64,000 nucleotides of DNA from Lepidodermella squamata (taxonomy: Eukaryota > Animalia > Gastrotricha). The position numbers and the translations under genes are program-made. Shown one piece after another: positions 26,874 through 54,547 of this stretch. Numbering within the stretch: the first letter of the stretch is position 1; each line of letters opens with the position of its first letter. The notes below the pieces were generated by a model. That model was not told the origin of the DNA. It made no database searches and saw only the letters and a list, made by a program, of their open reading frames with translations. Location: NCBI GenBank assembly GCA_047495785.1, contig JBLDXI010000028.1, positions 186,001 to 250,000 on the forward strand. Direction: 5' to 3'.

Positions 26874-26965
26874 GAGTCGGCTGAGTGAGTCAAACACCTG
26901 GAGTGGCTAGTTGATACGGTACAGCGAGCCAAAAGTCTTAAATAGATTAACTATGATGCTATATT
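26874..26965 (+). pseudogene. Decayed remnant of Misato exon 5 3' end
   Basis: GAGTCGGCTGAGTGAGTCAAACACCTGGAGTGGCTAGTTGATACGGTACAGCGAGCCAAAAGTCTTAAATAG aligns to 26522-26593 and into the 3' flank, with an internal TGA. Confidence 0.8.
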
Positions 26966-28308
26966 AATTTCATTTTTTGCATGGCGTGGAAAACTTGACA
27001 ATTATGTACTTATCATGTTTTTCTTTTCACATAGAATTTTACACAGACTGGTTTTATTTCGGCTTATTCAAATGGCGCCTGGGCACTGCTGGCCTCATGA
27101 CTTGTGATAGACGATTTGAACTATCAAAAATCTTATACGGCAATTTTGAGATTCGAACGTGAACACAGTGGCCTAGTGGTTAGGCACCTAGCATAGGTAG
27201 TGTGGTTCTAGTGAGTCACGGGCAACGGGCACTGATGTTTATTTCTTTCTCCGCTGAATTATTGCTTGTTCCATTTCCTCACTGTGTTTAACATATTTTT
27301 CGGGCAATAAACGGAATCATATTTTGAGGTACCTGTTGTGTTTTGTCTTCATGATTTGACTACCTGTCAAAAATTTTATAAATTATCGCTGATTGTTGGG
27401 AATTTAGAATGCATTGGAACTTTTTCTGGATCTCGTTCAGCCCAGAGAAATGAACCAAGCTTAGTTACCTTACGCAGGGTGACAATTGGTTGGCGAGCCG
27501 AAGTTCCGACCGCCGAGCTCTTCCAGCCAGGGAGATGGGCCGCAGAAAAGACGTAGAATTGGTAAGTAATTTTACGAATTGTGCTTTATTCGTGCTTTGT
27601 TGAAGTCCGAGTCGATTGAACGCTGTTTCAAATAGACCAAGCAAAATTGGGCATTCATCTTTTAACGAATCTGGAAAGTTCTGGCGTTTTTTTATGGGGC
27701 ACGAAATAAGAAAATGGGGGAAAATATGGCTAAATTTGCTTGTAATCTGAAATCTGGCTGACAGGCGCGTTTTGAAGCCAGGTATGAATGAACTGTGCCC
27801 TTAGTCGTGCCGAATTCTTTGCTTGCAATGAGAGTGGGATACAAAAGCCCAGGCTTATAGGGTCAAAAGAAACGAACCAGCCTTGATTCCAGTTCGGCCA
27901 ATTCTTCGAGAGTTTTTTGTCGAAATACTTTGTTGTTAACACATCCCTCTTCTCAATGAAATCCTAAAACGATCCTAAAATTCGGGATGGCCGATAGGTG
28001 AAGAGCATGATCCCATAAAATGTGTTAAATTATTTATTCAACTTTTTCAGGCAATTCATCATTTCATTTTGATCTGTTTTTTGACATTTTTTTTCGAAAA
28101 TTCCGAAATTAGTTGTATTTTTCCTGATGAACGAAAGGGACTCCATGGTGCATCTTCCAATTTTTTCAAAATGTATGAAAACTTCTATAGCGAATTGGTG
28201 GCCACAAAGAGTTGTATGATGATCGACTATGAACTTATGTTAAGCTTGACCGGCTGTCAAAAATAACTAAAATAAAAAGATTCTCTGAAAAAGTTTTTAA
28301 TCCAGCTA

Positions 28309-29073
28309 TACCGTAACGAGTGGTAACTTTGGACAAAACGTGTTTTTCAAACATTAAAAATCAGCCTTTGCTGCTAAATTTCTGAAATTTTCACCGAAGG
28401 TGGGGACGGTGATTCTTGAATTTACTGCAAATTTTGAGAATTTTGATAATTTTACCTGACCTTTGGCAAATTGAAATGTGTTCCGGTAACTTTGGACAAT
28501 TAGAGGGTAATTTTGGACGCTCATTTGCATATGCAATTTCATCGCAATTTCATTTTGAATAATAAGTTTCTCATGTTTTTTTCATTTACTCTTGGGTCAG
28601 ATTACGAAAGAAATTATGAGCATCATCTGTTTTTCAGAAGTTCAATAAAAATACATTTTTGCGCAGCCGCATACTTATACCGTCTAAAAGTGTCCAAAAT
28701 TACCCCCTTTTTCACCTGTTTTTCAGGTAAATGCCCTGCTAAAACGCGTCGACGGATTGCAATTTTTTCTTCGATTATAGGGAGAGTAAAGATAGGAGAA
28801 TAGACATGCCAACTTTTATTGAAAACTGATCGATTTTTAAAAAGATAGAAGGGGGTCCCAAAACGGCACCCAAAGTCTACCTGCTTGCAAATTTTTCTGA
28901 AATCCGATTTCAGCTCCAATCGTCTTGATTTTTATGTCAAACGAAAGCTGAAGAGACGGAGAATTGTATGCAAAAAATCCCACGATTTAAACATTGAATT
29001 CTGAAAAGCTAAACACCTGTTAAGTCGAAAGTGTCCAAAGTTACCGTGTCCACAGTCACCACACGTTACGGTA
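28309..29073. mobile_element. Non-autonomous Tc1/mariner(pogo)-like DNA transposon
   Basis: Termini TACCGTAACG.GTGGT.ACT.TGGACA and its reverse complement ...GTGTCCACAGTCACCACACGTTACGGTA, with TA at both ends and internal GGTAACTTTGGACA repeats. Confidence 0.7.
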
Positions 29074-29789
29074 ATATGAACTAACTTGATCTGAAAATTG
29101 CGAGAATAACCGAGGTTAAGGCATCAAGTGGTACGATGTACGATCCAGATGCCTCAATTTGGCAGAGTGACTTCTTTGTTAAAAAAAAATAGGCCGGCAG
29201 AAAATAATATTAAAAAATTGTTTTCCTTACTATTATGCCACTATAATTTCCACTTTTTATTACGCAAATTAACGGTTATTAATTTCATTCGATTTGCGAC
29301 CACGCTGGCATGACCTTGTCACGGGCTGTGCTGATTGTGGAGGTACTGCTAATTTTTTGATCGAATTTCGAGATGGCAATAATTTGAATTAAACTAATTT
29401 GAATAACATGTTAATTTGAATCAAACTTCACCAAGGCCTAATTCGGAATTCGGTTAAGAAAAATAGTGATTTTTCCTCTGTTGACTAAAATTCTACGATA
29501 AAATTAAAATAGAAGGAGCTACGTCGATTTTTTATCAGGGTTGCCAGCGTATATCTCAATAAAAACTCTGAAATGATTCAAATCTTGCGGGCTAGATTAT
29601 AAGCAACTAAATCTTCGAAAAATCATTCATTTTGGCCATATCTGAAGCCAAGTGGTCTTATTCGCTTTGCAATTAAAATTTGTTGCCGAAAATTAAAATT
29701 ATGAAAATTCTAAATTCTAAGAGAAAAAATGTCTGAAATAGGAAATCAACCAATCAATTAATAACCGATCGTTTAAAAAATAGGTACTT

Positions 29790-30047
29790 TCTGCGCCAGG
29801 GGATGAATGAAATCAAAGAAGCATGCGACGGCCTCGAAGGAAGTTCTCCCACCATCGCTGGGTGATGGCTGCTGCCGGTGCGGATTTCCCGGCTAAGAGA
29901 TGGATCGACCGGCCACATTTTTCGCCGGAATTATGGACGAATTCGTCGCTGCCTGTGCCGCTGTCTTAGCTAGCGGACAGGGCCTGGCCTAACCAGCGAC
30001 GACACCCGGCCATCAGCATACCAGGTATAAGTTATAACCTGAGTTTT
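29790..30047 (+). pseudogene. Decayed remnant of Misato exon 3
   Basis: GATGAATGAAATCAAAGAAGCATGCGACGGCCTCGAAGG, GCCGGAATTATGGACGAATTCGTCGCTG and CATCAGCATACCAGGTATA match 24755-25150 with deletions. Confidence 0.8.
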
Positions 30048-31070
30048 ATGTTAGATTTTCGGTAATTCATGACCTATTACTCGAACGACCTTGCAACCAA
30101 GATAAATACACTTATTTCCTCCATTTTGTTGTCTCTTGTCATCGCCTTTCAATATAAATGGCGTAATCGAAACGGAGTTGAATTGAAACATGCGAGGTCA
30201 TGATGAGTAACGTAATTCCACCTGGATGAGGTGAAACTTGGGCCGACTTCAAGCGCAGTAATGTTAGTGCGCACTCATGCCGGTCACGCAGGGTATTCTT
30301 TGTTTCGAATTAGGGTCACATCGATGTCTTGGTTTTAATTCGCCGCTTCTCACTTGTCAGCCGCTGGCTCCGTTGCTTCGTTCATCTTCTCGTACGTTTT
30401 CGAGTTTAAAAAATTGCGAGATTTATTTTTCAACCAATTCAAACAAAATTGTAAAATTTGAAATGATTTTCCTTGCGTATTTATTCTGGAAATTGTCGTA
30501 AATAATGTAAGAAATAGTACGTAAGAGTGAGTCAGAGGCCCTATTCTAGAGTTTTCTAGACTTCGCTGTCCGCCCGATGTTGATAAGGGTTTATGAAGCG
30601 TTTTTATTCGCCGTTTTTCACCGTGGATTTTTATTAGAATTCGAGTCTTGTCGTATAATCATTTTGCATTCCTTGTTTTCCCTCAGAATGTGAAATAACT
30701 TACAGCCACGGCGTGATGTGTTCTGCTATATCAACAACATTTCCACAGCTTTACGCTACTTTCCAAATCCTTCAAAATTCCGCTTATTGCAGCTTTCTGA
30801 GAGGCTCTAGGACAAGTCTATGTTGATGCTCATGATAGTAGATTAAATAAACCTGTGACTTAAGCAATAACCCAAGTAAGCTGCATTAGAAGATCAAAGC
30901 ACAAAGCCCAATGACCTTGAAATTTGTTTATAGTTCTGCTCTAGCTATTGCTAGCGCCCCACCAGATTTATGTTTTCTTTTTCCACGAGTTCTATCGATG
31001 CTAATTTCAGCTAATTTATTTTCTATCAGAATTTTCTAGCATTTTTATTCAAAATTTTAAATTTTCTATC

Positions 31071-32907: not shown

Positions 32908-34441
32908 AAATAGCACAAACAACCTAATGATCAAGTCCACCGTGTCAAGCTCTTCCATACTGATAATCAAACTGTCATCACGTCCTGATTGGTACTAGCA
33001 AGAAATTTAGCTTTGTCTGGTCTGATAATTAATTGTGATAGTCGCTAAAAACCGGTGATATATATATTGCTATATATAGTAGTCAGTAGTCAGAGCAAGT
33101 TTTGAGCAGTCGTAATTCCCGGTTTTGTGTGCTGATGTTCATTTTTTTCGGAGATGTAAGCTGCAATCTTGTCTCTTCGTGTTGTGGCAGCCTGTGCTGA
33201 AGACAATAAAGAGGACCGCAAGCTACTTGTGTTTTGTGAAAATAATTGCTTGAGGTGGTTCAAGTTTTTCGGAGGTCTTGCGATGAAGACCCCCTGCCAA
33301 AATTAAAATCAATTGTAATTTTTGCACCATAAGGGAATTTTCATCAGTTCGGGGTGGCGATTCCAATAAGTGATTATCAGAGCAGCATTGATGAATAAAT
33401 TTGCTTGCTATTTACCGAGCAATAAATGGCTTACATTTCTGTGCCTCATTTGTAGCTTTTTTAGTTTCGACGCGTTTCAAGGTCGCCAAAATCTGTGCGC
33501 CCGCTGGAACATCTGGATCAAGCTGATAGCTCGCGGTCTGGGTCTTCATTATTGTCGCGGTGGGTTATATCAGCGATAGAAGGCAATTTTTTATTGTAAA
33601 ATTTCATTTCGAAAGGAAGAATGAACAATTAAATTAAAATCAAGGTTCCGCCCGGAAGCCAAGTCAACTCCTAAAACGAGACTGACATTTATTCATCTGA
33701 ACCGAAAGTTAAGCCTATATTTTATAGAAATTTATATACCTATTGCAGATGCGATTTGGGCTGTTTTCGGGCCTAAATAATTGGTTCTGACCTCGTTATG
33801 TGCCTCGAAGGGGTCCCCCACAGAGCAGCAGGCTTCAAAGCAGGGTAAACGCACACTACAGTCCTCCCAGTCTCACATTTTTGTCAATATTGGGGGAAGG
33901 GGGAGGGTTATTTTCGAAGCCGTCTTTATCGATATTCCATAGATTATTCCATAATGTCAACTTCATAACAGGTATGATTTCCGAACAAAACATCAACTTT
34001 ATTTTACTAGAATGAGTTCTATCTCGATAAAGTCGTCCAGCCTCGCCTTAACGGCCAATTTTCGTCCGAAATCGAACGCTTCGACTTCAAAAACACGGGT
34101 CGACCTAATTGTATTATGAATCATAGCGTACGTCACGGCTAATCAATCTGAAACTGCGCGACAATCTGCGCCTGGTTTTTCCTTCAGATAAAGCCAGCTT
34201 TATTCGATAAAATTGACTTTTCGGCTAATGTCGAAAATGGACATCTTCGAAGATAGCAAGCCGTCTTTATAATAATACGTCTTTATAATAATTATAATAA
34301 TAGCAAAACGGCGGACAAGTGAACCGTGAGTTCCAGAACGATCAAGACTTCGACCCACACCACCGTCAATCGTTCGTCAACATGACTCGCGGCAGCCAAC
34401 GACATCAATCTGGCGGATACTAGCACTACTCCACCGGCCCG

Positions 34442-37228
34442 GTGTCGAAAACTGGTAAATCATTACTGAATGACAATGCTAATGTGATAATTTCTCCCCC
34501 AAGTAACAACTATGATTTTTTGTTTCTCAATTTTATAGCCTGGAACATATTTAAATTTAGACCAGAATCTTTTCCTGAAATCATACTGTTATTGAAAAAA
34601 TTTCTTATTGTTGCCCTTCTAGAAACTTGGCATGATTCCAAATTTGTGCCGCCCTCTTTGCGTAAAGAATTTTTTGTTATTCATTCACCAGCTAAAAAGC
34701 TAAATAATGTGAGAGGTCGTAATTTGTCAGGAGGAATTATCGTTTACATTAACTCATCTCTCAAATCAATAATCAAAGTCTTATATAAATCTAGCTACCT
34801 GGTTGTTCTCAAAATTGATCTACCTGATTTTACCCTGCTATTGGCTTTCTGTTATATATTACCGGAAAAAAATGATACGATTCAGCGAAAATCGTTGAAA
34901 ATTGCTACCAAAAAGAAAATTTCTACCAAAATTTCTAGTAAAAAACAGTACAGTGGTCGTTTCAAAAAGCTCTGGGCCGAGACCACCAACAAATTGACTG
35001 AAATTAAAAATAATATTCGCATTGAAAACCTCCAGTCCCAAAAAAGGATTGAAATTATTATTATGGGCGACCTCAATATTCGCACTGGAAATTTAAATAG
35101 GACCTACGACAACCTAGACCCAAACTCGGACTTCTTCTGCAGTCACGTGCCTCCCAGAAACTCGAAAGATATTGAACTGCCCAAATGCGCTGCTTCAAAT
35201 CGTAATTACTTTTTTGAAAAGCTGGACGAAATTGGGCTTTACATCGTGAATGGGACCACACCATCCGACCAGCTTGGAGAATTTACCCATAAAAAACTCG
35301 GTGATAACCACAAACAGGCATTCACAGTCGTCGACTATGCTTTGGCGACCGAAACCCTCGCCGGGGAAATAAACGATTTTGAAGTTGTTATTAATGGGGG
35401 AATCTCAGACCACTACCCGATAGGCCTCAGCCTCGCTAGAAAAATCAAACTTAGCAATACCGACCACAGTTTTGATGATGACAAAGTCAATTTTCGAGTT
35501 AATAAGCATCAATTTGCATCACTGTGGGAGCACTTTCAGTTGAGAAACGCGCACAAAATCACTGACGAATTATCAGTACAAAACTTGTTACTGACACTCT
35601 ACAAAGTTGGCAAGGAAGCTTTGTACATCCGTAAACCCAAGCCAGAAGCCGAATCTTCTAGCTCATTTTTCGACGAGGAATGCCACTCAAAGAGGGCCCG
35701 GCTTAGAAAAGCTAGAACCCTATCAATTAGGCACCCCAATAATCCAGCATTTAAAGCAGACATGGATCAGGAGGAGAGAGAGTACCGCTATCTCCTTAAC
35801 CAAAAAAAGCAACAAAAAGAATCAGAACTTAAAGCCGAGGCTATCGAATTTTCAGAACTAATTGAACTCTGCCCTGCTGATTTTTTTAAGCTCGTTAAAG
35901 AGTACAACCGTTGGAAAGAACTTGATACCAATCTTGAGATGCCCTCACCCACTGAAATCATAGACGCAGATGACTTGGTCCTGATGGCCGAAAACCCCGA
36001 AAACTTACAAAAGTCACTCGATGAACTAGCTTCCTACTGTGACGACAACTCCCTTAAAATTAACGTTGAGAAAACTAAAATAATGATTTTTGAGAAACGT
36101 TTTTCCGAAAATATCAACCTAAAATTTACTCTCAACGGTGAATCTATTGAACGAGTAAAAGAATTTAAATACCTAGGCGTTTATTTCACGCATAATTTGA
36201 ATTTCGACAAAATGGTGGAGGTTATCAATGCGAATACAAAACGTATAACCGCACTGATCCCGAACATGATAGAGAATTTTACTACTTATCTTCCACCGAA
36301 AACATTTAATATTTTACACAACTCATACGTCATCGGCAACTACACTTATGCCAGTGGCCTCTGGGGCCAGACAAAAAAGAATAAAGTTTTCTCATTTAAC
36401 ACCCATTTCGTGAAACAAATTTGTCGAATTCCAACCTCTGCTAGGAATGAACTAGTAAATCGCGAATTCTACCTCGACCCACCTGCACTTGTCCTCACAA
36501 AATCAGCCGTCAGGTACTTCCTACGACTCAAGTTTGAGAACGAGCATGTGCTTATCAAAACTGCCTTTGACGTTATTGACGCAAATAAAAATCTATATCG
36601 CCATATTTTCAAACATTTACAAAGTGATGTCGAAAAACTTGGGGGCACCAACATCTTCACCGCCACTTCTCAATTTGAGGGTTTGGCTCATCTTGGAAAG
36701 TGGTACGAAGTGTGGATAACAAACAACAAAAAATCTATAGCTAATGATTTAAAAACTATATACCAAAATCCTGTTTTTACAGACGAAAATTTCGACAAAT
36801 TGCTGCTATATTCTAATGCTCAAAATGCTTTTTGGTCGGTGAAAAATATTAGGATACTCAGTATGATTAGGACAAACTCTCTCCATAAACCCTTTTGCTA
36901 TATCAATAACTTAGGATTAAAATGCATTTTCTGTCTTAAACATGGTGATTCGCTTGCTACGCCTATTAGAAATTTCCAAGATACTATAGATCTAATATGC
37001 CACCTCTATATTGAATGTAAATTTATCCCGAACCACACTCCTCTAACACAACTAGCCTCGATCGATAGTATCAATCATAATGTTAATAATTTTGTCAATT
37101 CAATTATCGAATCCATAGTAACTTGCAAATCCGTCAACAATATCGCACTGCCACACATCTTAACTATAGCTTCTAACTACCGACTCGCTCTTAAATTACA
37201 CGTTTACCCTAACAGTAATAACAATTAA
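34442..37228 (+). mobile_element. Non-LTR retrotransposon (LINE) ORF2: APE endonuclease plus internally deleted reverse transcriptase
   Basis: APE motifs IAWNI, LLETW, MGDLN, VVDYAL, SDHYPI. RT retains only ADDLVL, LKINVEKTKIM and FKYLG onward. C-terminal C-x2-C..H..C. AATAAA plus a (TTGC)n tail at about 37462-37484. Confidence 0.88.
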
Positions 37229-38072
37229 TGCGTAATTCTCCTGTCCTCTCTTTTCTGTCTTCGCCAATTTATTTAAATAATTCCCACGTCATGATCAGAA
37301 CTATATGTATTATAACTTTATATTATGTATTATAACTTATATTGTAACTATATGTTATGCACGTGTATGTATACATATATATCTGTCTGTGTTTATTATG
37401 TTCGAAAATATTCCAGGACGCGCCCAAAGCCGATGGCCGGTGCTAGTTTGCTTTTTTGATCAAATAAAACATTGCTTGCTTGCTAATAATACTTTTGGGT
37501 CCAGTACCTTCATAATTGCCTTTATAATAGTATCAAATTGAGCTGACTTCATTGATAGATTCGACTTCAACATAAGGTCTGCTTCGAAATTAAATTTAAT
37601 CGAAAATGAAAATGTTGCAAAAATACTTATGCTGAAACATTTTCGGGAAAATATTGAACATTTTTTTTGGCAATTCTATTGAAAATCACGAAATTATTGG
37701 CCAAAGCAGGTTGTTTTGCTGCTGAATAATTGACGCTATCAGGCCTACTCCACGGGTTAGTTCCGCTAAAAGTATAAGAGCCTTTGCAAACAATCGGTAA
37801 GTAATCACTTGAAAAAATATTTTTAATCTTATATGGAAAAATGCCATGATTTGATATAAAAAGTAGACATTTTTCAATCTAAAACCCAAGATGAAGATAA
37901 CGGCTTCGGCATTTGGTTATTGGTAGCTGTGATTTATTATCGAAGCCAAATAATCGTATTACTAGGATGAGGGCGTTTGACCTCGCTAACAGTCTAAAGT
38001 GTAGGAAGTTGTGGTCGGAAATGCATCAGAAAGCTTTAGGCGTGAGCTAAGTATAACAATGTTTGAAAAAAA

Positions 38073-41000
38073 TCGTGGACCCTAAGTTTTGTGAGTAATT
38101 TTCCTCATATTTTCAAACATTTCCATGCCTGCTGGGCAAATTTGGAAAAAAATGAAAATTTGAACTAAAATTGAGAGAAACAATGAAAGCCTATAATGAG
38201 GAAAATTGCTAATTCGCTAATTTTTATGTAGAAAGAATCGTTTGAAGGGAACTAGAAAATATATTGTAACTATTTTTCAGCGTCGAGTGATGGATGAAAT
38301 CGAGGAGCGGGTGCGGTACTAAAAAATTGAAATTAATTTACCTATCTAAATTGTTTGCCAAAATTTATCTATTTATTTTAAAATGAATTTAAAATAAAAA
38401 ATCAGCCGTTAAGAGTCTTTACGTAAAGAATGAGGTAGCTGTAAAAATCGATGGGAAGTTATCAGAATTTTTCTACGTAAATAGAGGCCTCAGACAAGGA
38501 TGTCCTTTATCGCCACTCCTTTTTATCACCACTTTCAATAAAATATGTGAAAAAGTAGCAAATGAAAAAGCCGGGTTTCCGTTGGGAAAACATTTTCTTA
38601 ATATTTTGGCTTTCGCCGATGATGGAACGCTGTTAGGCATGAATCACAACGAAATTAAGCTGTTATTAGGAATTTTCGACGCGGCTTGTAAAGAACTGGG
38701 TCTCAAAATTAACGCGGCGAAGACGCAATAAGTATATGATTATAGGAGGTGACCCAAAGAGAAATGAAAAATATAATTTGCAATTAGAAGGAAGCAAACT
38801 TGAAAAAGTAAGCACGTTCAAGTATTTAGGTAGCATTATAACTGATGATGGCAAACTCAGCCAGGAACTTATAGCACGCATTGCGAAAGCAGGTAGCTGT
38901 TTTGGCGAGATAAGCAAATTTATGTGCAAACATGTCTCTTTGGCCGTAAAATAAAAAATATTAAAATGCGTTATTATTCCAGCATTGATGTATGCCTGCG
39001 AGTCATGGAATATTACTGAAGACGAAGAAAGTGCGCTAAATACCCAAGAATATAGGTGGCTGCGATGCATCTTAGGAATTACAGTAATGGACTATATCCC
39101 TAACATAGACATTAGACTATCAATGTGTGGCGGAATAATTGAAGTCGGTAGATTAGATAAAAACAACGCCTAAATTACCTAGGACCTAGGACATATAATA
39201 AGGATGGAAACGTATGTCGACGATGAAGATGACCCGATACCACCGGGGCCAGTTTACGACCTTTACAGGTGGGTAGCGCCTAAGAAATGGCAGAGACCGG
39301 TGGAAAGACCTCGAACTAGGTGTCTCGATTCGGTAGAAAGAAGTTTAAGAAGAGTGGGTCTTACAGCCGAAAATATAATAAGGAAAAAAACTGACGGGTC
39401 CCGTGGCAGACCTCGTAAAGATGGTAGTAATATAACCGAAATTTTCGAAATAACTGTTAACTGGACATTGACCGAAACAACTGCACTAGATCGAGACGAA
39501 TGGCGTAAAATTGTCGAGACTTTTGAAGATTTTGAATTTTACAACAAAAGCAAGATACTCTCGGACGTGGGGGCGGTTGACTGATTCTTTTGGTTTGCCT
39601 TGCCTTCGCCTTCCTCAGAACCCGAAAGGGTATAGACGCTCAGTCGCGGGGAAGTGAAACAATAAAATCATTTCATTTTATTTCATTAAAATAAAAATTG
39701 CCTAAATTTAAAATGAATTTTGATTTTATTTTTCAGCGTCGAGTGATGGATGAAATTGAAGAGCGGGTGCGGTACTTTGCCGAAGCGTGCGACGGCCTCG
39801 AAGGCTTCCACCTGCTGTCGACGATGCACGACGGGTGTTCGCAGTTGAGCCACGATGTCCTGCAGTGGCTGGGCGATGACTACGCCAGGCGAGCTATCCT
39901 CCTCGCCCCGGTCGAACCCGCCCGCCTGCCTATGCGGTCGAGTACGACGACGAACTCGGGCATTTTGCCAGCGCAAAGATTGATCAACTGGGCGAGGTTT
40001 CTGCCGGAATTGTGGGCAAATTCGTCGCTGCTGGTGCCGCTTTCGTTGTCAGGCGACAGCCTGTGGCAGGGGCCTGGCCTTAATACCGAGGATGATACCC
40101 CTCTGCCGATCATCAACATACCCGGTATACGATATAACGTGAGTTCTGTGTACAATTTTAAAGGGATTCATCGCCTGTTACTTAAAACTAGATTTCAGTT
40201 CCCAATTTTCACCGTTTCTTCAGTCTAGGTTGTATTCAAATTTTGTCAAATTTGATTTTACGTTTAGGGTGACTCTAACTACCATACTTCGGCTGTGCTA
40301 GCAGCGGCCCTTGATACAGCCACCCTGCCGTACCGCCTGTCCAGCTCCGATGGTGCAGCCTACTCGCAGCGACTTGGCATGTCCGAATTCTTCGGCGTCG
40401 GCTCGAAATATCTCAAGGTATGAAATACAAAATATGAAATCAGACCCATCGAGTTGAATGGTGATTGAATTGTTGCGCAAATTTGAAGGCTTCAAAATCT
40501 GAGTGCCTTCTGATTTCGTCTAATAGCGAATCTTAAGTACCGTAGCAAAAGCTGAGCAAACCTAATGATAATCAGCTAGCTTGGGCTTCGAGTTCCGAGG
40601 AATATCGAAGCTTCATGGGGTTTCATTTCATCGAAAATTCCGATGACTGGTAAAATTAACTACTTAATTGGGCTTGACATGCTCTGGATTCTTAAATTTA
40701 ACACTTAACTTGAAATGCGATTCTTCCATAATCGAATCGAAAATCAAAGTAGGTGAAGCAAAGATATCAAGTTTTTTCAAGATGCCTTTGGTCGGTTTCT
40801 TCCGGCTAATTCGCGCATAATTGAGAAAACCCTAAAAATTGAAACAATTGATTGAGCTTATTCTGTTCTTTCTGCCGTTTTTAGATTAACGAGATGCAAG
40901 TGGTTTTGTCGTACCCGTTGAGGCAACCGCCCGGTCTCACGCCAGAACCAGTGAAACCCCTGGAAGTGACTTGGACCTCGTTATCACCGCCTCCGATTTC

Positions 41001-41487
41001 TCAGTCGAAACTCAACTCGGCAAGCCACGGCAACAGCAACGCTCGCCTGCTGTCCCGCTGCTGCACATTGCGAGGTCTCGAATCACTGCCAGTCGCTGAT
41101 AAATCGGCTTTCGCGTCGCCTGACATGCGTCGATTCTTGTTCACGAAGGCGGAACGCGATTTCGAGGCGACTTTAACGAAATCCCTACCAGTGGTTGATT
41201 CTTTCGTGAAAACGCACTGCAACTTGGTGGCCAAGTCGTTGTCTGTTAAAAAGCCGTTTCCTCGCTCGATTTTCGCTGGACCCCGCAGCGATGCAATGGC
41301 GAAACCCATGGCCAGCGCGTTGGTTTCATCTGGCGCGCATGTCGCGACGTTCCTCGGTAATCTGCATGGGCAGTGTGAGCGCATGTCGAGGTCGAAACTG
41401 GTAACAGTGCTGCCGGAGTCGACCGAGTGGTCCGAACACCTCGAGTGGCTGGTCGACACGGTGCTGCGAGCTGAAAGTCTCAAATAG
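38073..41487 (+). pseudogene. Second, 5'-headless copy of Misato (last 18 nt of exon 2, intron 2, exons 3-5; copy B) with open exons
   Basis: 38073-38092 is identical to 24319-24338, and homology continues through intron 2. Exons 39737-40138, 40268-40417 and 40885-41487 are open, have intact splice sites and encode a nearly identical protein. Confidence 0.9.
38400..39690 (+). mobile_element. 5'-truncated, decayed LINE (RTE-like) reverse transcriptase fragment
   Basis: GLRQGCPLSPLLF, LAFADD, FKYLGSII and LMYACESW motifs with stops. AATAAA plus a (TTTCA)n-like tail near 39660-39690. Lies between 50-bp direct repeats 38271-38320 and 39727-39776. Confidence 0.85.
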
Positions 41488-42120
41488 ATAAACTGTGATG
41501 CTATATATTTGCGCCATTATTATTTGTGATTTTTTTGCGTTGCGCGAAAAACTGGACAATTATTTACTCCGAATTGTTTTCTTTCTAAGTAGAGTTTTGC
41601 GTAGTCTGGTTTTGTTTCGGAATATTTCGGCTGGTTTTATCTCGCTGAGCCGGGAAATGAACCAAACTTGGTCACCCTGCGCTGAACCTAACTGAAATGA
41701 GTTTGTAAGTGGCTATCATGTCGAATTATTTCTTAGAAGCTACCCTCAAACCGAATTTAAATCCGCCGAAATTTAATTTACAGTCCGAAATCTCCAGAAC
41801 CTAAAATCACAGAACCTAAAATTGTCAGTATAGAGTATAGATCAATGAAAATTAAGCCGTTGCTTCATAAAAGTCCAGAAAGTTTAAGCGATTGCTCATT
41901 TGGCTCAACTTAACTCGAAACTAGCTCAGGCGCCTTTTGCAGCAAAGTTCGAAACCAACACAGCCTATATTGGTACGATATTGTCTAATCTCTCGAGTCT
42001 TCAATGTAAAGAAAATGGAGATCTAAATTTGTCCTGGAACTTGATTAACACATTTTCTTTCATATTGGACTTCGAAAATCGAATTACCAGATTTCTTACA
42101 ACAAAAATATATTTCTTAAT

Positions 42121-42525
42121 TTTTCAGCGCCTGGTGGTCTTATAAGCCTTGCAGGCTAGTATGTTGCCGAAAATTAGATAGAAAATTTGAAAATTCTAAG
42201 GGAAGAAACAGTGAGAAGTCCAAACCACGGCCAAAAGAGACAAATTCTGAAATGAGCCGATGGAGAAATAACTGATCTTTAAAAAAATGGGCATTTTCAG
42301 AACCGGGTGGATGAAATTGAGCCACGATGTCCTGCAGTGGCTAGGCCCTGCGAGCTATCCCTACTCGCCCCAGTTGAACCCGCCCGCCTGCCTGTGCGGC
42401 TAAGTTCGATCGACAGGGCGAAGTCGTCGCTGCTGTGGCCGCTGTCGTTGTCCGGTGGTAGGTTGTCGCAGGGGCCTGGTCTAAACACCGATGACGATCA
42501 CACCCGGTATAAGTTAAAACGTGAG
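42121..42525 (+). pseudogene. Decayed Misato exon 3 (older copy C)
   Basis: GAGCCACGATGTCCTGCAGTGGCT; the translation LLAPVEPARLPVR...LSLSGGRLSQGPGLNTDD matches exon 3 with deletions and frameshifts. Donor remnant AAAC|GTGAGT. Confidence 0.85.
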
Positions 42526-43324
42526 TTTTGTATGACATTTTCGGTTATTCATGACCCGACAGACTGACCTTGCTGCTATTGAAAATAAAAGATTTGTTTT
42601 CCTCCCATTTCTTTCCCTCTTGTCATCGCTTTTCATGGCGCAATATGGCGCAATCGGAATAGGCGCTGAATTGAGGCGGGCGAGGTCATGCCGGCTGACG
42701 TAATTCAACGTAGATGAGGTGAAACCTGAATCGACTTCTGACACAGTCATCTTTGAATTTTAGGGCGCGCTTCTTTTAGACAGGCCACGCAGTGTCTCCT
42801 TTGATTTGAGTTAGGGTCACAGCGCTCCTCAAGTTTCGATTCACGGCTTCGCACTAGGCGGGCGGTTGATTCTCATTTATCTCCCCGCCCGTTTGAAAAA
42901 TCTCGCGGATTTGGTTTTCAACCGTTTAAATTATGTTTCAATATGTTAAGATGATTTTTTCTGCATTTTATTCTGTAATTGTGGCAGATAATAGGCACTA
43001 AGGTGAATCAGGCTATAGAAAAATCTAGAGCCTTCTATCCCGATGGTTGATGGATACGTGGGCCCATAATGATGGCTTTTACCTATCATTTCATTTCATT
43101 TGATTTTTTTCCAATTTGAACGACTATTTTAGCTGCTTAGTTATGTTTCGGCTACTAAACTTGCTTTTTGTTTCACCTTCGGCCTTCGAATGCGAAACAC
43201 TCCTTTCCTATTTTGAAGCCGATATGAGGGGGCAATCATGTGCATGCATTACCGCATTACCCTTCTTATTAAGAGGTGCCTCCTGAACGTTTTGCAACAA
43301 AATGATGAATGTTATCATTGGTTC

Positions 43325-43412
43325 ACAGGTTGATTCCAGCTTCGATACAGCCGCCACCCTGCCCAATCGCCTGTGTCCAGCTCTGACGCTTGGCTCGAAG
43401 TAGATCATGGTA
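43325..43412 (+). pseudogene. Decayed Misato exon 4 (copy C)
   Basis: TCGATACAGCCGCCACCCTGCCCAATCGCCTGTGTCCAGCTC...GGCTCGAAGTA resembles 25321-25427. Confidence 0.7.
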
Positions 43413-44426: not shown

Positions 44427-44675
44427 CAAATATTCTACGTTTGAAACTAAGTGAGACTAATACTTCACATGGTTGGAAAAAGCGATCTGGCCTTAACATT
44501 TTGTTATTTGTTATTTGCTGTGAAAAAACTTATTTTTCTTTGATTTTATCTTTGATAATAATACAACTGTAGCTTTCTGACCTTTCTGAAAGGTTCCACT
44601 GACTAATAATTAATCCGCTGTGATCGCTTTTTCAAACCAGGTGAGGTTTACTTAGTTTCAAACGTAAAATATTCT
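44427..44675. mobile_element. Small inverted-repeat element (MITE-like)
   Basis: AATATTCTACGTTTGAAACTAAGT...GGTTGGAAAAAGCGATC pairs with GATCGCTTTTTCAAACC...ACTTAGTTTCAAACGTAAAATATT. Confidence 0.6.
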
Positions 44676-46068: not shown

Positions 46069-46338
46069 TACTTTTAGCGGAACCAAATTGTTGCGGAACC
46101 AAATCCGCATGTCGCGGAACCTAATTTTAGATGAGAAAAAGGTCGATTTTCAAATATTTCCACGAAATTAAGGCAATTTATGAATTCTATACTAAAATGT
46201 GCGTCTTATACAGAATTTCACGCTGAATTCAAACGTAATTTATTTTAAATTATGCCGATCAATAATGACATCCTTATAACTTTCGAAAATGGGGTTTGGG
46301 CACACGGAAAATTCCAAAATTTGGTTCCGCTAAAAGTA
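46069..46338. mobile_element. MITE with about 21-bp TIRs
   Basis: TACTTTTAGCGGAACCAAATT ... AATTTGGTTCCGCTAAAAGTA, with internal GCGGAACC repeats. Confidence 0.7.
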
Positions 46339-46559
46339 AGACCCATTTACGAGGGACTGACATTTATTTATCCGAACCAAAAGTTGAATGCCTAGGTAAC
46401 CATAAAGGCATTCTATTCCCTGATACTACGTATTTTGACCCAATAAATTGGTCCCTCACTTTTCGAAGTGCCAAGAGTAGAAGTTATATCCAATCAAAAT
46501 GGCTGAAAATGATCTGGGTGCAAACCACCCGAACGGGGGCATCCAGGTATAAATTATAT

Positions 46560-48900: not shown

Positions 48901-49419
48901 TATATATTCAAAACTTTTGTTGGGATCAAGCTAGTGTCTCTAGGACAACCTCAATCAATGGCACTTTCCCGGGCATCTCTGGGGTTTTCCGTGTTTTAAG
49001 GCGGATGGGAGCATCCTTAAGTTCTGAAATTTGAAAATTCAAAATCCTCATGAAAAACCGAGTAAAGACATCTAGGAATCTAAGAATCGTCCCTCCTCAA
49101 GTCAACACACGTTTTACCATTTGCTTGAAAATACAGAAAATACGCCAAACCCCACTTTTCACTTATTTTCGGTCAAATGTAATTCTTTTTTGAAAAATAT
49201 TATTTTTTCTATAATTTGCTGAAGTACGAATATGCAATCTCTGCTGCCCTTTAGAGGTTGGAAACCGAATTGTAGTTTCGAAATTTTTGATCCTATCAAA
49301 GATCGCAATTTTCTTTCCAGAATAATGGCATAAAGTTTGCTTACTACACTTAGTAGACTGATACCTCGGTAATTTTGACACTTACATTTTTCGCCCTTAT
49401 TTTTGTAAATTGGGGTAAT

Positions 49420-49700
49420 TATGGCTGTTGACCATTCCTCATTTTTCTTTCCAGGCTTGGTTCAGAATTTCGCTGAGCCATTTAATATTGGTTTCACTGA
49501 GGGCTTTAATCATTTCTGGTCGAATTTCATCGACCGAGCTTTCCCATTTTTCATGTGGTCAATAGCGTTCTTAATTTCGGTTAGTGTTATTTCAGTCAAG
49601 CTTAGGTTTTCAGGGGAAATATTTGGTTCAGGGTTGTCAGGCTCATTTTTCAAATCCCAAAATCGTTGAAATCTCTGGAAATCATGTATGGGTAGATCGA
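49420..49700 (-). mobile_element. Decayed LINE RT N-terminal fragment
   Basis: EITLTEIKNAIDHMKNGKA is typical of the segment preceding non-LTR RT domain 1. Confidence 0.55.
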
Positions 49701-50514
49701 CCACAACAAAATGCGAGGGAAAACATTTACAAGAAGTTGATTACTCGAAATTGGATTTCTTATGATGACAAATGAGAAGTTTTTTTATGGCCAGGATGGG
49801 TTTAAACCAAATAAACTCGGAATTTGTTATGATCATACCGGCATTTTGCGCCTTTCTCACGATGTTTTCCCACGATGCTTATTGCCGTAATTGATTTTGA
49901 AATCCCTGAAATCAAACTGTTTTGCCCCAATCAAATCGTTATTCTTTCAAATCAGTCCCTGAAATCAAATCACATCTAAAAAAGGTCTGAAATCGTGAAA
50001 ATCGAAATCTGAAAAATCAAATCCCCAACACTGCTCAGTTGAGGCTGCTTAGACCTCAGCAGAATTGATAAGTTTCATGTGTTCTTGCTGTAGAAAATGA
50101 AATGACTCGCGGGAAATCAAAACATTTTGGTCGCCTAATTTCTCGATATCGGCTTCCGATTGTTTGAATTTCACAACAATATTCAAATTTTTCCTATAGA
50201 TGTATGAACAGTTTGATGGGCAATGAGAAAAATGGACGGTTCCCGTTTGCGCGTCTTATTTTGCGCGACACGCACCATGCATATGCACCATGTGATAGTC
50301 GAGCAGATCGCGAGAAAAATGAAAGCGTGTTTATATGGCGGAAAAAAGCTGAAAAACGCTGAAATACACTTTTCTCGTCTGGGAAGTGCTGAAATTGTTA
50401 GCTGAAATGTGCCTCTATTGATACGAAAGATAACCTGAAATCATTTGCCAGCTTATTTCAGCTTATTTCGTGCCGGTCTGGGTAACAGTTCAGCTGATCC
50501 AATGAATTCTACCT

Positions 50515-50775
50515 GTTCTGTTCTTTAGATTAACGGCATGCAAGTAGTGCCGCTGTACAAGTTGAGGCAACCGCGTGGCCCCACGCCAGAAGCAGTTTTA
50601 AACCACTTGAAGTGATGTGGACACCGCCTCCATTTCCGAAGTCACAACTGAATTCGGCAATATTCATCGCAACGGCAATGCTCGCCTTGCCGCCTGTTGC
50701 GTCGCTAGACCTGCGTCAATTTTTGTTCACAAAGGCTTAACGCGAATTCGATGCGACTTGAGCGATATCCCTACC
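50515..50775 (+). pseudogene. Decayed 5' part of Misato exon 5 (copy C), acceptor retained
   Basis: CTGTTCTTTAG|ATTAACGGCATGCAAGTAGTGCCGCTGTAC..TGAGGCAACCGC and CGCAACGGCAATGCTCGCCT align to 25980-26295. Confidence 0.85.
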
Positions 50776-50866
50776 CTTCTAATAGCAGTTTGCGACAGGT
50801 TTATGTTCGATTTTTAGTAAATTTTCTGTCTTTTCCGTAGATTTTTAAGAGTAATTTACGATTACG

Positions 50867-53363
50867 ATGGCACCATCAGCTGTCATTAGTCTGCAACAGA
50901 ACTCTCGGCTCTCGCTCCTTCAGTATATCATCTTCGACTTGTTCGGAAATATCTCCAAGGTGCTCGACGATATCCTCAAGGTGTTCGACGAAAACGAACG
51001 CCTTAAGCAAGAAAATCCAAACGGATACCATATCCTTGATAAGGCTGTTGAACAATTGCACCGAGAGCGCTCCAAACCAGTCTGCGTAAAAAGTCTTCCC
51101 ATAATTGTTCAGCTCATCAGCGCTCATAAACGTGTATACAATCATGTAACGGTTCATCAAGGACATGGAGACAATGAAACAACGAGGAAAGTACTCGAAG
51201 AACTAGGAGCACGACGAGGATTACTGGTTGCGCTGCAAATGGTAATCAAAAGTATAATCTCAGAAGAATTGACCTATGTTCCATTACGCGTCGTACGCCC
51301 TTGCTTGAAGGAGCTGCTGGATAATTTCGCAAGCACCTGCATGCCACCTCCCAACGGTTTTTTCGACGACAGCCTCGGACTGTTTTACAAAACTGTGAAC
51401 GATGACATCCAACTCCTCGACCTGGTCGAGGATTCGACATACATTGAACTACTCAGCCCGGCCAACGATCGGATGTACATTGAACTACTCGGCCAAGTCA
51501 AAGATTCGATGTACATAGATGATGTAACGTTTTTTATCCCGCTACCTTACTCCGTATCGCAATCGAATGGTAGTCTTTGGATAGCCTTCTTTTTAGGAGG
51601 TGGCTCTTACGAGACCGCGGACGCTGTGGAAACCAAGATGAATAGATCCATCTTGTCATGGTTGGAGTTCAATATCCAACGTGGCCAAAGAAATTGCCAC
51701 TTGGTCTGCCTCGAAGACGCCAAATGTGGCTATAATCGATATGGATACCTGCGAAAAACCGTGGAAGCTTTTTTGAGGGACCAGAGTAATAAATCAATAT
51801 TAAAGGACCTGCAAATTAGCGTCAGAGTTCAACGTGGTTTTATGAGGTTGAATGGCCAAACTGACAACAGGCTCAGCTGCGCTTTTGCTCTGACATGGGC
51901 CGCGAGCAACGCCCGACGGTTGGGTTATCGAATGCCACCGGCTTTGAGGCGTGAAAGCGTCGGACGCAACATCATCGACTCAGAGGAACCAACTTACGAA
52001 GAGATCGGAGTTGTACCGGATGACCGTCTCGTTTTCTGGTCACCCGAGGATGTCAACTTATTAAAACACGTTTGTAAGGAGTATTTTGGTACCAGAAGCG
52101 ATAATCAACCGCCAACTTTAAAAGATGTCATTGTTATCGTTAAACCCGTTGACGTCTTCAAATTGCTATGCTACTTGAACAAGTTCATTTACACAACAGA
52201 CGGAGCTAGTGACTTGCAGCGGACGGGCAAATTATCTCGGCTTAACCTGCGCAAAACCTTCAAAGCCATCATCAGCAGCAAATTGATTCGTTCCATCGTC
52301 CGGATTAACAGGGAACAACAGGTAACTGATAAATCTTTACTAAGAGCATGTCCGTTAGGTAGCCTTTTCGCGGCCGGTTTCAACTTTTTACCTTATTCTT
52401 GCTGAAAATTAACAAGAAAGCACATCTGGCATCTTTTTGGAAATCAACCCTTCAAGGGGAGGTTTGAGTTATCCGCGATTTTACCGAAGAAATTAAGAAT
52501 TAACCGGAATCCGGAACCCCATGGAATCGCGTCTCATCGCTGACTTTCTGATATCTTCTGATCGCAGCCGGTGGATAATACTTGGAGTAGGCCTCATACG
52601 CAACCAAAATTGAGGTGGATCGATTGTATTGAAAATATTTGAACAAAATCGGTATTAACAATTAACAATTATGGGGAGGCCCGGGATAGGAACGTTTGGC
52701 GGCGTTGTTATTTTGGGGAAATTTAAATTTTCGATCAAGAAATGATTGAGTTAGGCGAGCAGGATAGGCAGTACTCTTGGCGTGAACAAAATTATCCAGC
52801 GTATTGGGTACACCGGAGGAACTTCGTTTTATTATTTTTCTTTATCATTTAATTTTTTTAATTTGCTGATGATTAATTGAAGAAAATGATAAAATTAAGG
52901 TAATGCTAAGCTATGCCATGATCTGTTTTCCGTGTACTTGATTCTTTTCTTCTATTCTTTCATTTTGGTTTTATTTCATTCTGGCCTTTTAAAAATGAAA
53001 AATTATTGATTTACGAATGCGGCTAATTCTCCGATGATGATACTCATAAGTGTACTCATACATAATTTTTTTTAATATCATCAGGGTGAAGCAGGTTGGC
53101 CCGATGTCGGCAGATTCTTCATTCCTGATCCTAACAATCCTGGTGCCCCTCTCATCAATAAGCCGAAAGCCCTGAGCAAGGCATGCTTCGAGTTGTACAA
53201 GACTTGCTGGGAAAAAGGATGGAATATCAGCAATATCTCGAAGCCAAACGAAAGCTTTATCAGCCTGCAGGTCACCGTCGCAGAAGCTCATCAGGATTGG
53301 CTGTTGGTTCTCTGCGAATATCTAACTGCGCAGAAATTCGTCTTTTATCGCAGTTACGCCTGA
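50867..53363 (+). CDS. Orphan family member 2: 512-aa ORF plus a probable terminal exon 53085-53363
   Basis: Long open frame 50867-52405 after the acceptor ttttccgtag. In-phase donor CAG|GTAACT at 52321 and acceptor catcag| at 53084 would give about 577 aa. The 53085-53363 peptide aligns to the C-terminus of member 3. Confidence 0.65.
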
Positions 53364-54400
53364 CCTGCCGACATGGCCTCAAAATCAGTGAACAACCTGA
53401 ATGCAACCTGAACTTACCCTATTATCCTAGCGCTTATGACCTTATAGTTTAAACGCTGCAATATGCAGTATCTCCAGCGCGTCAATTGATGAGAGTTAGT
53501 GGCATATTTGTGGTGCAAATCTTTGCTGAAATCTTAGTGCTAAGTTCGTGACATGACAGCCAATAGTAAGTACCAAATTTTGTTAAGCGATCAAATATAC
53601 AAAGTTGTGTGCGCAATAAATGAAAATGCAATAACAAATTTGGTGCCTTTCTCTGGCTTTGTGAGCAGTTATTATGAGTTCAAAACTTGTGAATGTGCTG
53701 TCCGAAATGATTGCGTGGGCCTGACTTTGTGACGCAGCGGGCCGAAATGAAATCGGATAAATTACGCTGAATTGAGATTATTCGAATAAATATTATTTCG
53801 GATTATACTTGATTCCTACTTCCTATATGTTGAATTTCGTATTTCTCAATTGCTGAATTTTTAAATAATTTAGTAGACTTTTAATATAAAGCTGTCCATA
53901 AAATGGCAACTGTAAATACGCTGGCTTGATAGCACTAAGCCTTCGGACCTTGCGAATATTGGACAATATGTAAATGCGTTGTACACTTTCTCGCCTTTCA
54001 ATCGATCCACCGCTGGCGCTCTGTGACTTACGGTCGTTGAAAGAAACTTCGGAACGATGCCTCAGGCCGATCACACTTCACGACAAACAATCTGGATCTT
54101 TTGTCAAAACTCAAAGGAATGAATCGACTGTTTTTCAGTGCTACAATCTCTTGAAGAATTGCTGCAGATCTGGAACAGGCAAATGGGATCGGCGATAAAA
54201 GGTGACTCCTAAGGTTCGACCAAGATCCGTGGTTTATGGATAGCTTTGGAAGCCTGTTCACAGCGGGATCGCTGTCGACGACCTTTACCTATAGGGTGCT
54301 GATGGGCTCGCTGCCTGTGGGCTCAAAAGTCGAAAGCTTCGGGCGTTTTAGTAAATGGGCCGCCTTCTGATGTTGTTGAATTCTTGTCAAGGAACTGTTC

Positions 54401-54547
54401 TTGCATGAGCAGTGAGCAGCTGATGCAGGTTTTCGAGGTCGAAACCAGTTGCCACGGTGTTGCCCGAGTCCGAGATTTCCGAACGCCTCAAGTGGCTGCT
54501 CGATACGATGCTGTGAGCTGAAAGTCTCAATTGAACACGGCTGTGAT
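54401..54547 (+). pseudogene. Decayed 3' part of Misato exon 5 (copy C)
   Basis: CGGTGTTGCCCGAGTC...CGAACGCCTCAAGTGGCTGCTCGATACGATGCTGTGAGCTGAAAGTCTCAA aligns to 26511-26590. Confidence 0.85.

Follow-up and report, generated by a model that had tools for sequence, protein, structure and literature searches.

Downstream of the misato gene of the gastrotrich Lepidodermella squamata lies a run of decayed misato pieces. The locus raises the question of how many events left them there, and whether a dedicated mechanism or selection has to be invoked. The analysis covered a window of 64,000 nucleotides (contig JBLDXI010000028.1). An earlier note had read the pieces as a layered record of several ages in which exons 3–5, and only these, had repeatedly been displaced at much the same position. 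The cluster instead probably consists of partial duplicates of the sole misato gene, unprocessed and in tandem, that cover its 3' part and were generated by nested duplications. It amounts to two independent duplications of the 3' part and one small fragment (R), which is ordinary genome wear. The features are collected in Table 1, where the two old copies are called Psi1 and Psi2 and their parts are marked with a prime.

Table 1. Misato copies, remnants and mobile elements (window positions)
Feature	Position	Strand	Remarks
Copy A, live misato gene	23645..26593	+	canonical splice sites, unbroken frame (exon-model frame check)
Copy A exons	23645-23864, 24038-24336, 24747-25148, 25278-25427, 25991-26593	+	557 codons
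F_A, 3' flank of A	26594..26745	+	alignable to flanks behind R and behind B
R, last ~70-87 nt of exon 5 (to 26945) and ~140 nt of 3' flank	26863..27084	+	z 17.3
Psi1 exon-2 remnant	27403..27531	+	acceptor and first ~87 nt; weak extra piece 27509-27531
Psi1 intron 2' end	29647..29793	+	z 14.7 against Psi2 42129-42300; z <= 3.6 against A intron 2
Psi1 exon 3 remnant	29794..30038	+	tblastn E 9e-10; local-alignment z 21
Psi1 intron 3' block, end of unit I	30039..30590	+	shared with Psi2 intron 3'
LINE insertion between units	34401..37489	+	ORF 34442-37228 with endonuclease and reverse-transcriptase domains
Left edge of unit II	38073..38320	+	last 18 nt of exon 2 with donor, intron 2 pieces, first exon-3 acceptor copy and 40 nt of exon 3
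5'-truncated LINE fragment at exon-3 start of B	38321..39726	+	reverse-transcriptase motif readable in sequence
Copy B (exons 3-5)	39737..41487	+	39737-40138, 40268-40417, 40885-41487
F_B, 3' flank of B	41488..41620	+	passes straight into Psi2 exon-2 remnant
Psi2 exon-2 remnant	41620..41682 (best 41639-41682)	+	36/44 identical to Psi1, 18/22 to A
Short dispersed repeat inside Psi2 exon 2	41691..41853	+	>20 genome copies elsewhere, 76-82% identity
Psi2 intron 2' end	42129..42300	+	homologous to Psi1 29647-29793
Psi2 exon 3 remnant	42301..42520	+	HSP E values down to 9e-20; z 28
Psi2 intron 3' block	42521..43050	+	common to Psi1
Psi2 exon 4 remnant	43329..43409	+	internal deletions; canonical AG and GT still flanking; local alignment z 7.4
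Psi2 exon 5, 5' part	50513..50821	+	E 5e-24 and 7e-18; four stops
Psi2 exon 5, 3' end	54427..54533	+	E 1.5e-14; two stops

All misato-like matches in the 121-Mb genome fall within this one window. The open reading frame of exon 1 of the live gene, copy A, matches the N-terminal Misato segment II tubulin-like domain (Pfam PF10644) with 56.9 bits against a cut-off of 26.5, and a profile search of the whole genome exceeded that cut-off solely at this exon. Taken alone, exon 3 scores 29.6 bits in A and 29.9 bits in copy B against Tubulin_3 (PF14881; cut-off 30). Homology searches were done exon by exon. Queried for relatives, the exon-5 peptide returned no protein matches, and an exon of the neighboring ADP-dependent glucokinase gene found a best relative of only 48% identity. 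An Rfam search of the window gave no matches.

Copy B is intact, splice sites included, and has neither exon 1 nor exon 2. Its amino acid identity to A is 100% in exon 3, 98% in exon 4 and 98.5% in exon 5, with 4 of 384 residues differing. From the nucleotide differences, 64 synonymous against 4 non-synonymous (dS 0.26, omega 0.018), it is clear that copy B is maintained today by strong purifying selection. Since this dS and the differing transposon content far exceed allelic divergence, the possibility that the A/B tandem is an assembly artefact or a pair of uncollapsed haplotypes was rejected.

The six decayed pieces described in the earlier note are real, lie on the plus strand throughout and have no counterparts elsewhere in the genome. 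The last four, assigned to a third copy, do follow in native order (exon 3, exon 4, exon 5 start, exon 5 end). Stops occur in every remnant, along with multiple deletions. The remnants of exons 3', 4' and 5' begin and end at the splice sites of the parent with 16–35 nt of adjacent intron conserved. Exon 3' of Psi1 has a mutated acceptor and donor, several deletions and one stop. In Psi2, exon 4' was missed by BLAST and recovered by local alignment, while exon 5' starts at 50529 with 16 nt of the acceptor tract conserved. The two exon-5' pieces of Psi2 are separated by 3.6 kb containing an intact 512-aa ORF, which had no match in Pfam or Atlas. About 165 nt of exon 5 are absent from this interval. 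The copies are not retrocopies, because they preserve the intron positions as well as the sequence next to the splice sites; a processed pseudogene was discarded given the intron-sized spacers at native positions and the lack of poly(A) after exon 5'.

The old copies are not confined to exons 3–5. Both retain the 5' part of exon 2 (27403-27484 and 41639-41682), so that the reported absence of the exon 2 body fails for its first ~90 nt, and the segments 27420-27480 and 41630-41680, previously paired as flank, belong to this part of the exon. The match of 27403-27433 to A is 87% (E 0.001; z 10.9 for the 27.4-kb copy), and a weak additional match pairs 24267-24289 with 27509-27531 (z 6). For the exon-3 piece reported at 42121, position 42121 itself lies in intron 2' of the old copy and exon 3' begins at 42301. 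Exon 1 is single-copy in window and genome: as the earlier note had stated, no remnant of it was found, here by blastn, tblastn, shuffled local alignment, a whole-genome protein search or a whole-genome Pfam profile.

This distribution bears on whether the old copy, Psi, began as a tandem duplicate of the whole gene and later lost exon 1 and the promoter by deletion. In unit I, the flank is separated from exon 2' by some 320 nt of unassigned sequence without a match elsewhere in the window, as might be left by such a loss, and with non-coding sequence this old no longer alignable, loss is indistinguishable from absence. However, no trace of exon 1 appeared by DNA, protein or profile search, although further exons of that copy can still be recognized, and in unit II the flank joins exon 2' directly. 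A whole-gene origin is considered improbable. Four stretches of filler (26740-26873, 27085-27402, 30507-30900 and 37800-38072) have no matches elsewhere in the window. A tRNA-derived SINE in the stretch separating R from exon 2' (27168-27230) was also considered and rejected; ARAGORN reported no tRNA, and the motif occurs just once in the window.

The relationship between Psi1 and Psi2 determines the number of layers. Each comes directly after an exon-5 end and its 3' flank, and the same order and orientation are found in both units: exon-5 end, flank, exon 2', intron 2', exon 3' and intron 3'. Collinearity between the two extends through intron 2', exon 3' and ~550 nt of intron 3'. Their exon-2 remnants have in common deletions of 8–12 nt and 4 nt and 8–10 substitutions in about 80 sites. 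The pairing of 30040-30590 with 42520-43050, already described as flank, was borne out: as intron 3', 30017-30506 and 42499-42992 are 68% identical (E 7.6e-34, z 87), and this block has no further copy in the genome and cannot be aligned to A or B. More generally, the introns of A and B align with each other, as do those of Psi1 and Psi2, whereas those of the live gene and Psi do not.

In exon 3, twelve site patterns group A with B against Psi1 with Psi2, while the alternative groupings have 0 and 1. The maximum likelihood tree, calculated from the four L. squamata copies, was ((A,B),(Psi1,Psi2)) with the alternatives rejected (AU p 0.04). Under a stricter alignment, exon-3 substitutions alone left the four copies unresolved in a nearly star-like tree; as a result, the grouping rests on the MAFFT alignment together with the structural characters. 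Where A and B differ, Psi mostly has one of the two states, and A with Psi1 against B with Psi2 never occurs. Given the shared lesions, the private intron sequence and the common flank-to-exon-2 junction, Psi1 and Psi2 are best read as a single layer, that is, as two copies of one old partial duplicate that was multiplied passively en bloc. The proposed difference in age also disappears, as all remnants lie at one level of decay (K2P of 0.14–0.22 from the A=B consensus), with only a slight bias of the alignment filter on this divergence.

With these observations in mind, the model of the earlier note may be considered, in which a hotspot repeatedly inserts the exon 3–5 half after exon 2 and pushes older halves downstream to give at least three layers of different ages. 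It is consistent with the tandem, same-strand arrangement of all copies and with two 5' breakpoints less than 300 nt apart, at opposite ends of exon 2, and an older 3' end, once displaced, could have left R as its stump immediately downstream of A. However, the 5' breakpoints fall at the intron 1/exon 2 boundary (27403, ~41620), at 38073, which is 18 nt upstream of the exon-2 donor, and at 26863, ~87 nt short of the stop. All three differ, and no breakpoint was reused by independent events. The exon-2 remnants in both Psi copies, the single decay level and the features shared by Psi1 and Psi2, including the upstream junction, also disagree with the model. Recurrence at about the same position thus gives way to one duplicate copied passively. 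It remains correct that this was not a single accident, with at least two separate 3'-part duplications and the fragment of the exon-5 end, but the pieces are not independent events. A mechanism or a hotspot cannot be established from only two events, and this model is considered very improbable.

Slightly less probable still is a single complex replication-based rearrangement, in which template switching produced all copies and junctions at once. The nearly star-like substitution tree under strict alignment, the similar divergence across remnants and the unique filler at the junctions (~130 and ~320 nt) would all suit such an event. In contrast, Psi1 and Psi2 have lesions and substitutions in common, for which some time must have passed between the origin of Psi and its duplication, and a single event does not account for gene–Psi introns that cannot be aligned beside A–B and Psi1–Psi2 introns that can.

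The fragment R and the flanks add a complication to nested duplication. R is positioned about 120 nt past the end of the alignable 3' flank of A and ~270 nt past the stop codon of A, and contains one in-frame stop. Its piece 26874-26970 (exon-5 end and flank) is 77% identical to A (E 7e-18), with the match extending to 27084. The K2P values of the 3' flanks are 0.37 for A–B, 0.49 for A–R and 0.29 for B–R, and the topology of the exon-5 end and flank (A, B, R, Psi2) favored B with R without significance. A single en-bloc event leaves R unexplained. With B and R as the closest pair, the flanks suggest an extra step, perhaps the loss of a former third copy or, in unit II, a repeat-mediated deletion. 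The non-coding K2P between Psi1 and Psi2 (0.44) also exceeds the dS between A and B (0.26); thus, the A/B pair could be younger than the split of the units, for example via conversion or replacement.

The order of events and the mechanism may be inferred as follows. An older tandem duplication would have started at the intron 1/exon 2 boundary and continued for 150 nt or more beyond the stop, placing Psi (exons 2–5), with neither promoter nor exon 1, directly behind the gene. A later tandem duplication would then have copied a block from 18 nt before the exon-2 donor into intron 3 of Psi. With exons 3–5, the 3' flank and the flank-to-exon-2' junction in this block, the outcome would be unit I (A and Psi1) and unit II (B and Psi2). 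A small extra rearrangement at the 3' end of A may have given rise to R, after which insertion of LINEs and short repeats would have expanded the interval from roughly 8 kb to 31 kb. The LINE between the units has other copies in the genome at 98–100% identity, the LINE fragment is enclosed by a target duplication of ~50 nt (38271-38320 and 39727-39776, 96% identical), and the spacers carry dispersed repeats. In this history, Psi1, Psi2 and R would be decaying fossils with no present function, and B is still kept by purifying selection. That only 3' parts are seen probably reflects survivorship, since an essential gene stays whole only if the duplication extends past one of its ends, together with the instability of existing tandem repeats, which readily duplicate again.

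The earlier note had also pointed to a mechanism or a selective process. While two events cannot speak for the former, there is some evidence for the latter in the constraint on B and in the old copy. Relative to the A=B consensus, the remnants carry 51 synonymous changes where 32.8 are expected from the mutation spectrum (z 3.8). The excess is spread across most remnant pieces, and the maximum z in 150 neutral simulations was 2.1. An excess of this size misfits a copy that was dead from birth and hints that Psi may once have been constrained too.

The same duplication history is therefore open to a reading in which retention was not accidental: selection keeps a second, promoter-less cassette of exons 3–5 that was replaced once, with Psi constrained for a time and decaying after B arrived. 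Such a cassette might serve as an alternative 3' end to which exon 2 is spliced, or might encode a truncated protein. The constraint on B despite its missing exons 1 and 2 fits this reading, as does the synonymous excess. Non-degenerate sites of the remnants have a divergence of 0.13, half of the A–B dS, against ~0.22–0.24 for degenerate sites, and the Psi exons are only 14–22% diverged, yet the Psi introns cannot be aligned to those of A. The branch from A to the Psi1/Psi2 ancestor is ~0.10–0.12 in exon 2', long at the start of intron 3 and ~0.03 in exon 3', and indels are shared in exon 2' while none have shared boundaries in exon 3'. However, the segment where Psi1 and Psi2 overlap has 0–2 shared synonymous changes and about 4–7 would be expected if constraint predated the split. 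The counts are small and come from this one species, the long exon-2 branch could belong to the lineage of A itself, and a second cassette with an identical protein offers no obvious benefit. Cassette replacement is therefore regarded as a possible but rather unlikely addition to the history.

Considered as nested partial tandem duplication, the locus is a clean worked example and a useful, if unsurprising, caution: two events, a small fragment and transposon insertions can mimic a many-layered fossil record. The potentially important part is selective, namely a half-gene, B, kept nearly unchanged in protein and a decayed predecessor with a synonymous excess. If exon 2 splices to either 3' half, this essential tubulin-like gene would be unusual in having maintained, and on one occasion replaced, a duplicated multi-exon 3' cassette.

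Alternative or mutually exclusive exon cassettes that arise by tandem exon duplication usually encode differing peptide variants. Copy B has the layout expected of an alternative 3' cassette, with tandem exons 3–5 and intact splice sites downstream of a single exon 1–2; unlike such cassettes, A and B encode nearly identical proteins.

An unprocessed misato pseudogene beside its parent is also known from human, where MSTO2P is described as part of an anthropoid tandem segmental duplication at 1q22 (PMC6851037, citing Kuryshev et al. 2006). As this source describes it, the duplication spans ~240 kb with the whole gene and its neighbors, and the copies are >98% identical (PMC6851037). Set beside that description, the L. 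squamata cluster shares the origin by tandem segmental duplication but differs in that its duplications are a few kb in length, start inside the gene, are nested and are far more diverged, as an independent invertebrate event.

Partial gene duplicates make up 21–38% of young duplicates in C. elegans, 27% in D. melanogaster and 76% of D. melanogaster duplication CNVs (PMC3449122). The misato cluster resembles these small-scale partial tandem duplicates of animals in its intragenic breakpoints and in its tandem copies, which mostly decay and are occasionally retained. It departs from the usual case in that a partial copy was re-duplicated en bloc with part of its parent, and in that B, a promoter-less 3' half, is under strong purifying selection at a dS of 0.26.

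The live misato gene (copy A) was read as five exons comprising 557 codons with all splice sites canonical. Exon 1 scored well over the cut-off for Pfam Misat_Tub_SegII, and exon 3 alone scored slightly below that for Tubulin_3; misato searches were run exon by exon and the exons joined only for a frame check. Six decayed misato pieces had been claimed in the earlier note, and all were confirmed on the plus strand by self-comparison of the window, a sensitive scan with gene A, tblastn with each exon, and local alignments scored against shuffled sequences. Each contains stops or deletions. The exon 3 remnant placed at 42121 is real; however, that position lies in intron 2 of the old copy and exon 3 begins at 42301. 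Whole-genome queries (121 Mb, 151 contigs) were the gene DNA, the peptides of exons 1, 2, 3 and 5 individually, and the N-terminal profile of Pfam. All misato-like matches of the genome fell within the window, and exon 1 was single-copy genome-wide by DNA, protein and N-terminal profile searches, in agreement with the claim that it had left no remnant.

Table. Features of the misato cluster and its surroundings; K2P is the distance from the A=B consensus.
Feature	Position	Strand	K2P	Remarks
ADP-dependent glucokinase gene	20435-22439			same strand as misato, ~1.2 kb upstream of it; one exon matches Pfam PF04587 at E 1e-63
Misato exon 1 (A)	23645-23864			exons 1-5: sequence reading of 23580-26720 and frame check
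Misato exon 2 (A)	24038-24336
Misato exon 3 (A)	24747-25148
Misato exon 4 (A)	25278-25427
Misato exon 5 (A)	25991-26593
3' flank of A	26594-26745	+		aligned flank
R, exon-5 end and flank	26863-27084	+	0.18	decayed
3' flank of R	26946-27084	+		aligned flank
Psi1	27.4-30.6 kb	+		remnants of unit I
Dispersed repeat, ~770 nt	28308-29073			old-copy exon 2/intron 2 region; many genomic copies, 82-90% identity
Psi1 exon 3	29794-30038	+	0.22	decayed
LINE	34401-37489			between units; 928-aa ORF (endonuclease and reverse transcriptase); 98-100% identical copies on other contigs
5'-truncated LINE	38321-39726			at exon-3 acceptor/start of B; target duplication 38271-38320 / 39727-39776
3' flank of B	41488-41620	+		aligned flank
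Psi2	41.6-54.5 kb	+		remnants of unit II
Dispersed repeat, ~160 nt	41691-41853			old-copy exon 2/intron 2 region; many genomic copies, 76-82% identity
Psi2 exon 3	42301-42520	+	0.15	decayed
Psi2 exon 4	43329-43409	+	0.15	z 7.4; AG and GT signals retained
Psi2 exon-5 start	50513-50821	+	0.21	decayed
512-aa ORF	50867-52405			intact; flanked on either side by a Psi2 exon-5' piece; single-copy in genome
Psi2 exon-5 end	54427-54533	+	0.14	decayed
451-aa ORF	54916-56271			just downstream of cluster

Two sequences previously described as paired flanks (27420-27480 with 41630-41680) are, by alignment to A, the 5' part of exon 2. In A, the counterpart of 27403-27484 is the exon-2 acceptor together with the opening ~87 nt of that exon (z = 10.9), and identity is 87% for the initial 31 nt (E = 0.001). 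The second remnant, 41639-41682, is identical to the 27.4-kb copy at 36 of 44 positions and to A at 18 of 22. Both remnants depart from A by the same two deletions, one of 8-12 nt and one of 4 nt, and by 8-10 shared substitutions over ~80 sites. Therefore, the two old copies (Psi1 and Psi2) comprise exons 2-5 with only exon 1 missing, and the statement that only exons 3-5 recur no longer applies.

Psi1 and Psi2 are collinear across the exon-2 remnant, the final stretch of intron 2', exon 3' and ~550 nt of intron 3' (primes denote parts of the old duplicate). The intron 2' ends pair (29647-29793 with 42129-42300, z = 14.7), and the pairing reported for ~30040-30590 with ~42520-43050 was borne out as an intron 3' block (30039-30590 / 42521-43050, 68% identity, E = 7.6e-34, z = 87), of which no third copy was found across the genome. 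Alignments of Psi intron sequence with the introns of A or B, the intact downstream copy of exons 3-5, extended no further than 16-35 nt beside splice sites (z ≤ 3.6). Directly preceding each Psi is an exon-5 end with ~130-150 nt of 3' flank, namely the decayed fragment R in unit I (A and Psi1) and the intact exon 5 of B in unit II (B and Psi2). When exon 3 with its borders was aligned across all four copies, 12 sites separated A and B from Psi1 and Psi2 versus 0 and 1 for the alternatives. The maximum-likelihood tree ((A,B),(Psi1,Psi2)) had an internal branch of 0.09 with both alternatives rejected (AU p = 0.04), and a stricter block-filtered exon-3 alignment returned it again without significance. 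Wherever A and B disagree, Psi1 and Psi2 act as an outgroup, and a pairing of A-Psi1 with B-Psi2 was never seen. The simplest reading of these alignments is that Psi1 and Psi2 are non-independent copies of one old partial duplicate, Psi.

The remnants had also been assigned to several ages; they form a single decay class (K2P 0.14-0.22 from the A=B consensus) with no stratification. Copies A and B are separated in exons 3-5 by 64 synonymous changes and 4 non-synonymous ones (dS = 0.26, omega = 0.018) and in introns and flank by a K2P of 0.08-0.37. Between Psi1 and Psi2, exon 3' has diverged by about 0.27-0.34 and non-coding sequence by 0.44. Since decay is unstratified and its value at non-degenerate sites (0.13) equals half of the A-B dS, the remnants constitute one class approximately as old as the A/B split; in simulations, the alignment filter depressed such divergence estimates only slightly. 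A single class fits an en-bloc event and not several layers. Psi itself would have originated before the split since its copies share exon-2' lesions and private introns, and since introns of the live gene and Psi are unalignable whereas those of A and B, and of Psi1 and Psi2, can be aligned.

In the proposed history, the older Psi would have been copied along with the live 3' half in one tandem duplication. The duplicated block would begin at 24319, 18 nt short of the exon-2 donor, and end at ~30590, inside intron 3 of Psi, yielding unit I and unit II, the latter starting at 38073. Dispersed repeats occur in the long Psi2 spacers and in the 7.5 kb that separates the units. The 5' breakpoints differ by junction, lying at the exon-2 acceptor in Psi, 18 nt ahead of the exon-2 donor in B, and ~87 nt ahead of the stop in R. 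Those of Psi and B are ~280 nt apart and that of R is elsewhere. There were two independent duplications of the 3' part, plus the small R fragment. Recurrence at the same position, as proposed in the earlier note, is unsupported since breakpoints differ among the three kinds of junction and Psi1 and Psi2 appear not to be independent; a mechanism cannot be drawn from the 3' bias, which is statistically weightless with two events. Only 3' parts are seen because a duplication past the end of an essential gene spares one intact copy, whereas an internal one breaks the gene. We take the cluster to be an ordinary tandem segmental duplication in which existing repeats favoured later copies.

Without exons 1-2, the protein of B is nearly unchanged over a dS of 0.26; judging from sequence, B must therefore be translated in some form. 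Exons 3-5 of Psi could likewise have been constrained for a period, as those of B are now, in a turnover of cassettes under selection. Compared with the A=B consensus, the remnants show 51 synonymous changes versus 32.8 predicted from the mutation spectrum (z = 3.8), an excess found in most pieces, and the highest z among 150 neutral simulations in the same pipeline was 2.1. The unalignable Psi introns also favour such a turnover, as does an A-to-Psi-ancestor branch of about 0.10-0.12 in exon 2' and the start of intron 3 versus ~0.03 in exon 3'. However, the segment where Psi1 and Psi2 overlap has 0-2 shared synonymous changes versus 4-7 expected if constraint had preceded their split, and the turnover is a live minority reading, rather improbable and not a finding.

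R is not accounted for by one en-bloc duplication. It may be the stump of the original 3' end of unit I or the leftover of a third copy; alternatively, it may be a local duplication that unit II lost through recombination between repeats. The closest pair of 3' flanks is B and R, and the A branch is longest, although not significantly; R-B divergence is 0.29. The B flank branch is by far the shortest of the three (about 0.01-0.09), and the 3' untranslated region may be better conserved in B than in A.

The window is non-human animal DNA and carries spliced genes and LINEs with endonuclease and reverse-transcriptase domains; an Rfam scan of it gave no match. For the glucokinase exon, the best database relatives come from arthropods, spiders and priapulids (≤48% identity), and the collections searched thus contain no close sequenced relative of the window. 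The LINE family represented between the units was probably active recently. The target duplication of the truncated LINE is unusually long (~50 nt) and recreated an intact acceptor, and exon 3 of B therefore survived the insertion. An ATG in frame with this exon is found 21 nt before it, in sequence adjoining the LINE. The 512-aa ORF had no match in Pfam or Atlas and is a distant paralogue of the 451-aa ORF (25% identity over 159 aa, E = 7e-5); the two may represent an orphan gene family, one member of which is situated inside a decayed misato exon.

Most of what the earlier note observed is thus correct, and the locus belongs to a known kind, being a cluster of nested partial duplications. 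Partial duplicates make up a large share of young animal duplicates (PMC3449122). In anthropoid primates, misato also gave rise to an unprocessed pseudogene through tandem segmental duplication (PMC6851037).
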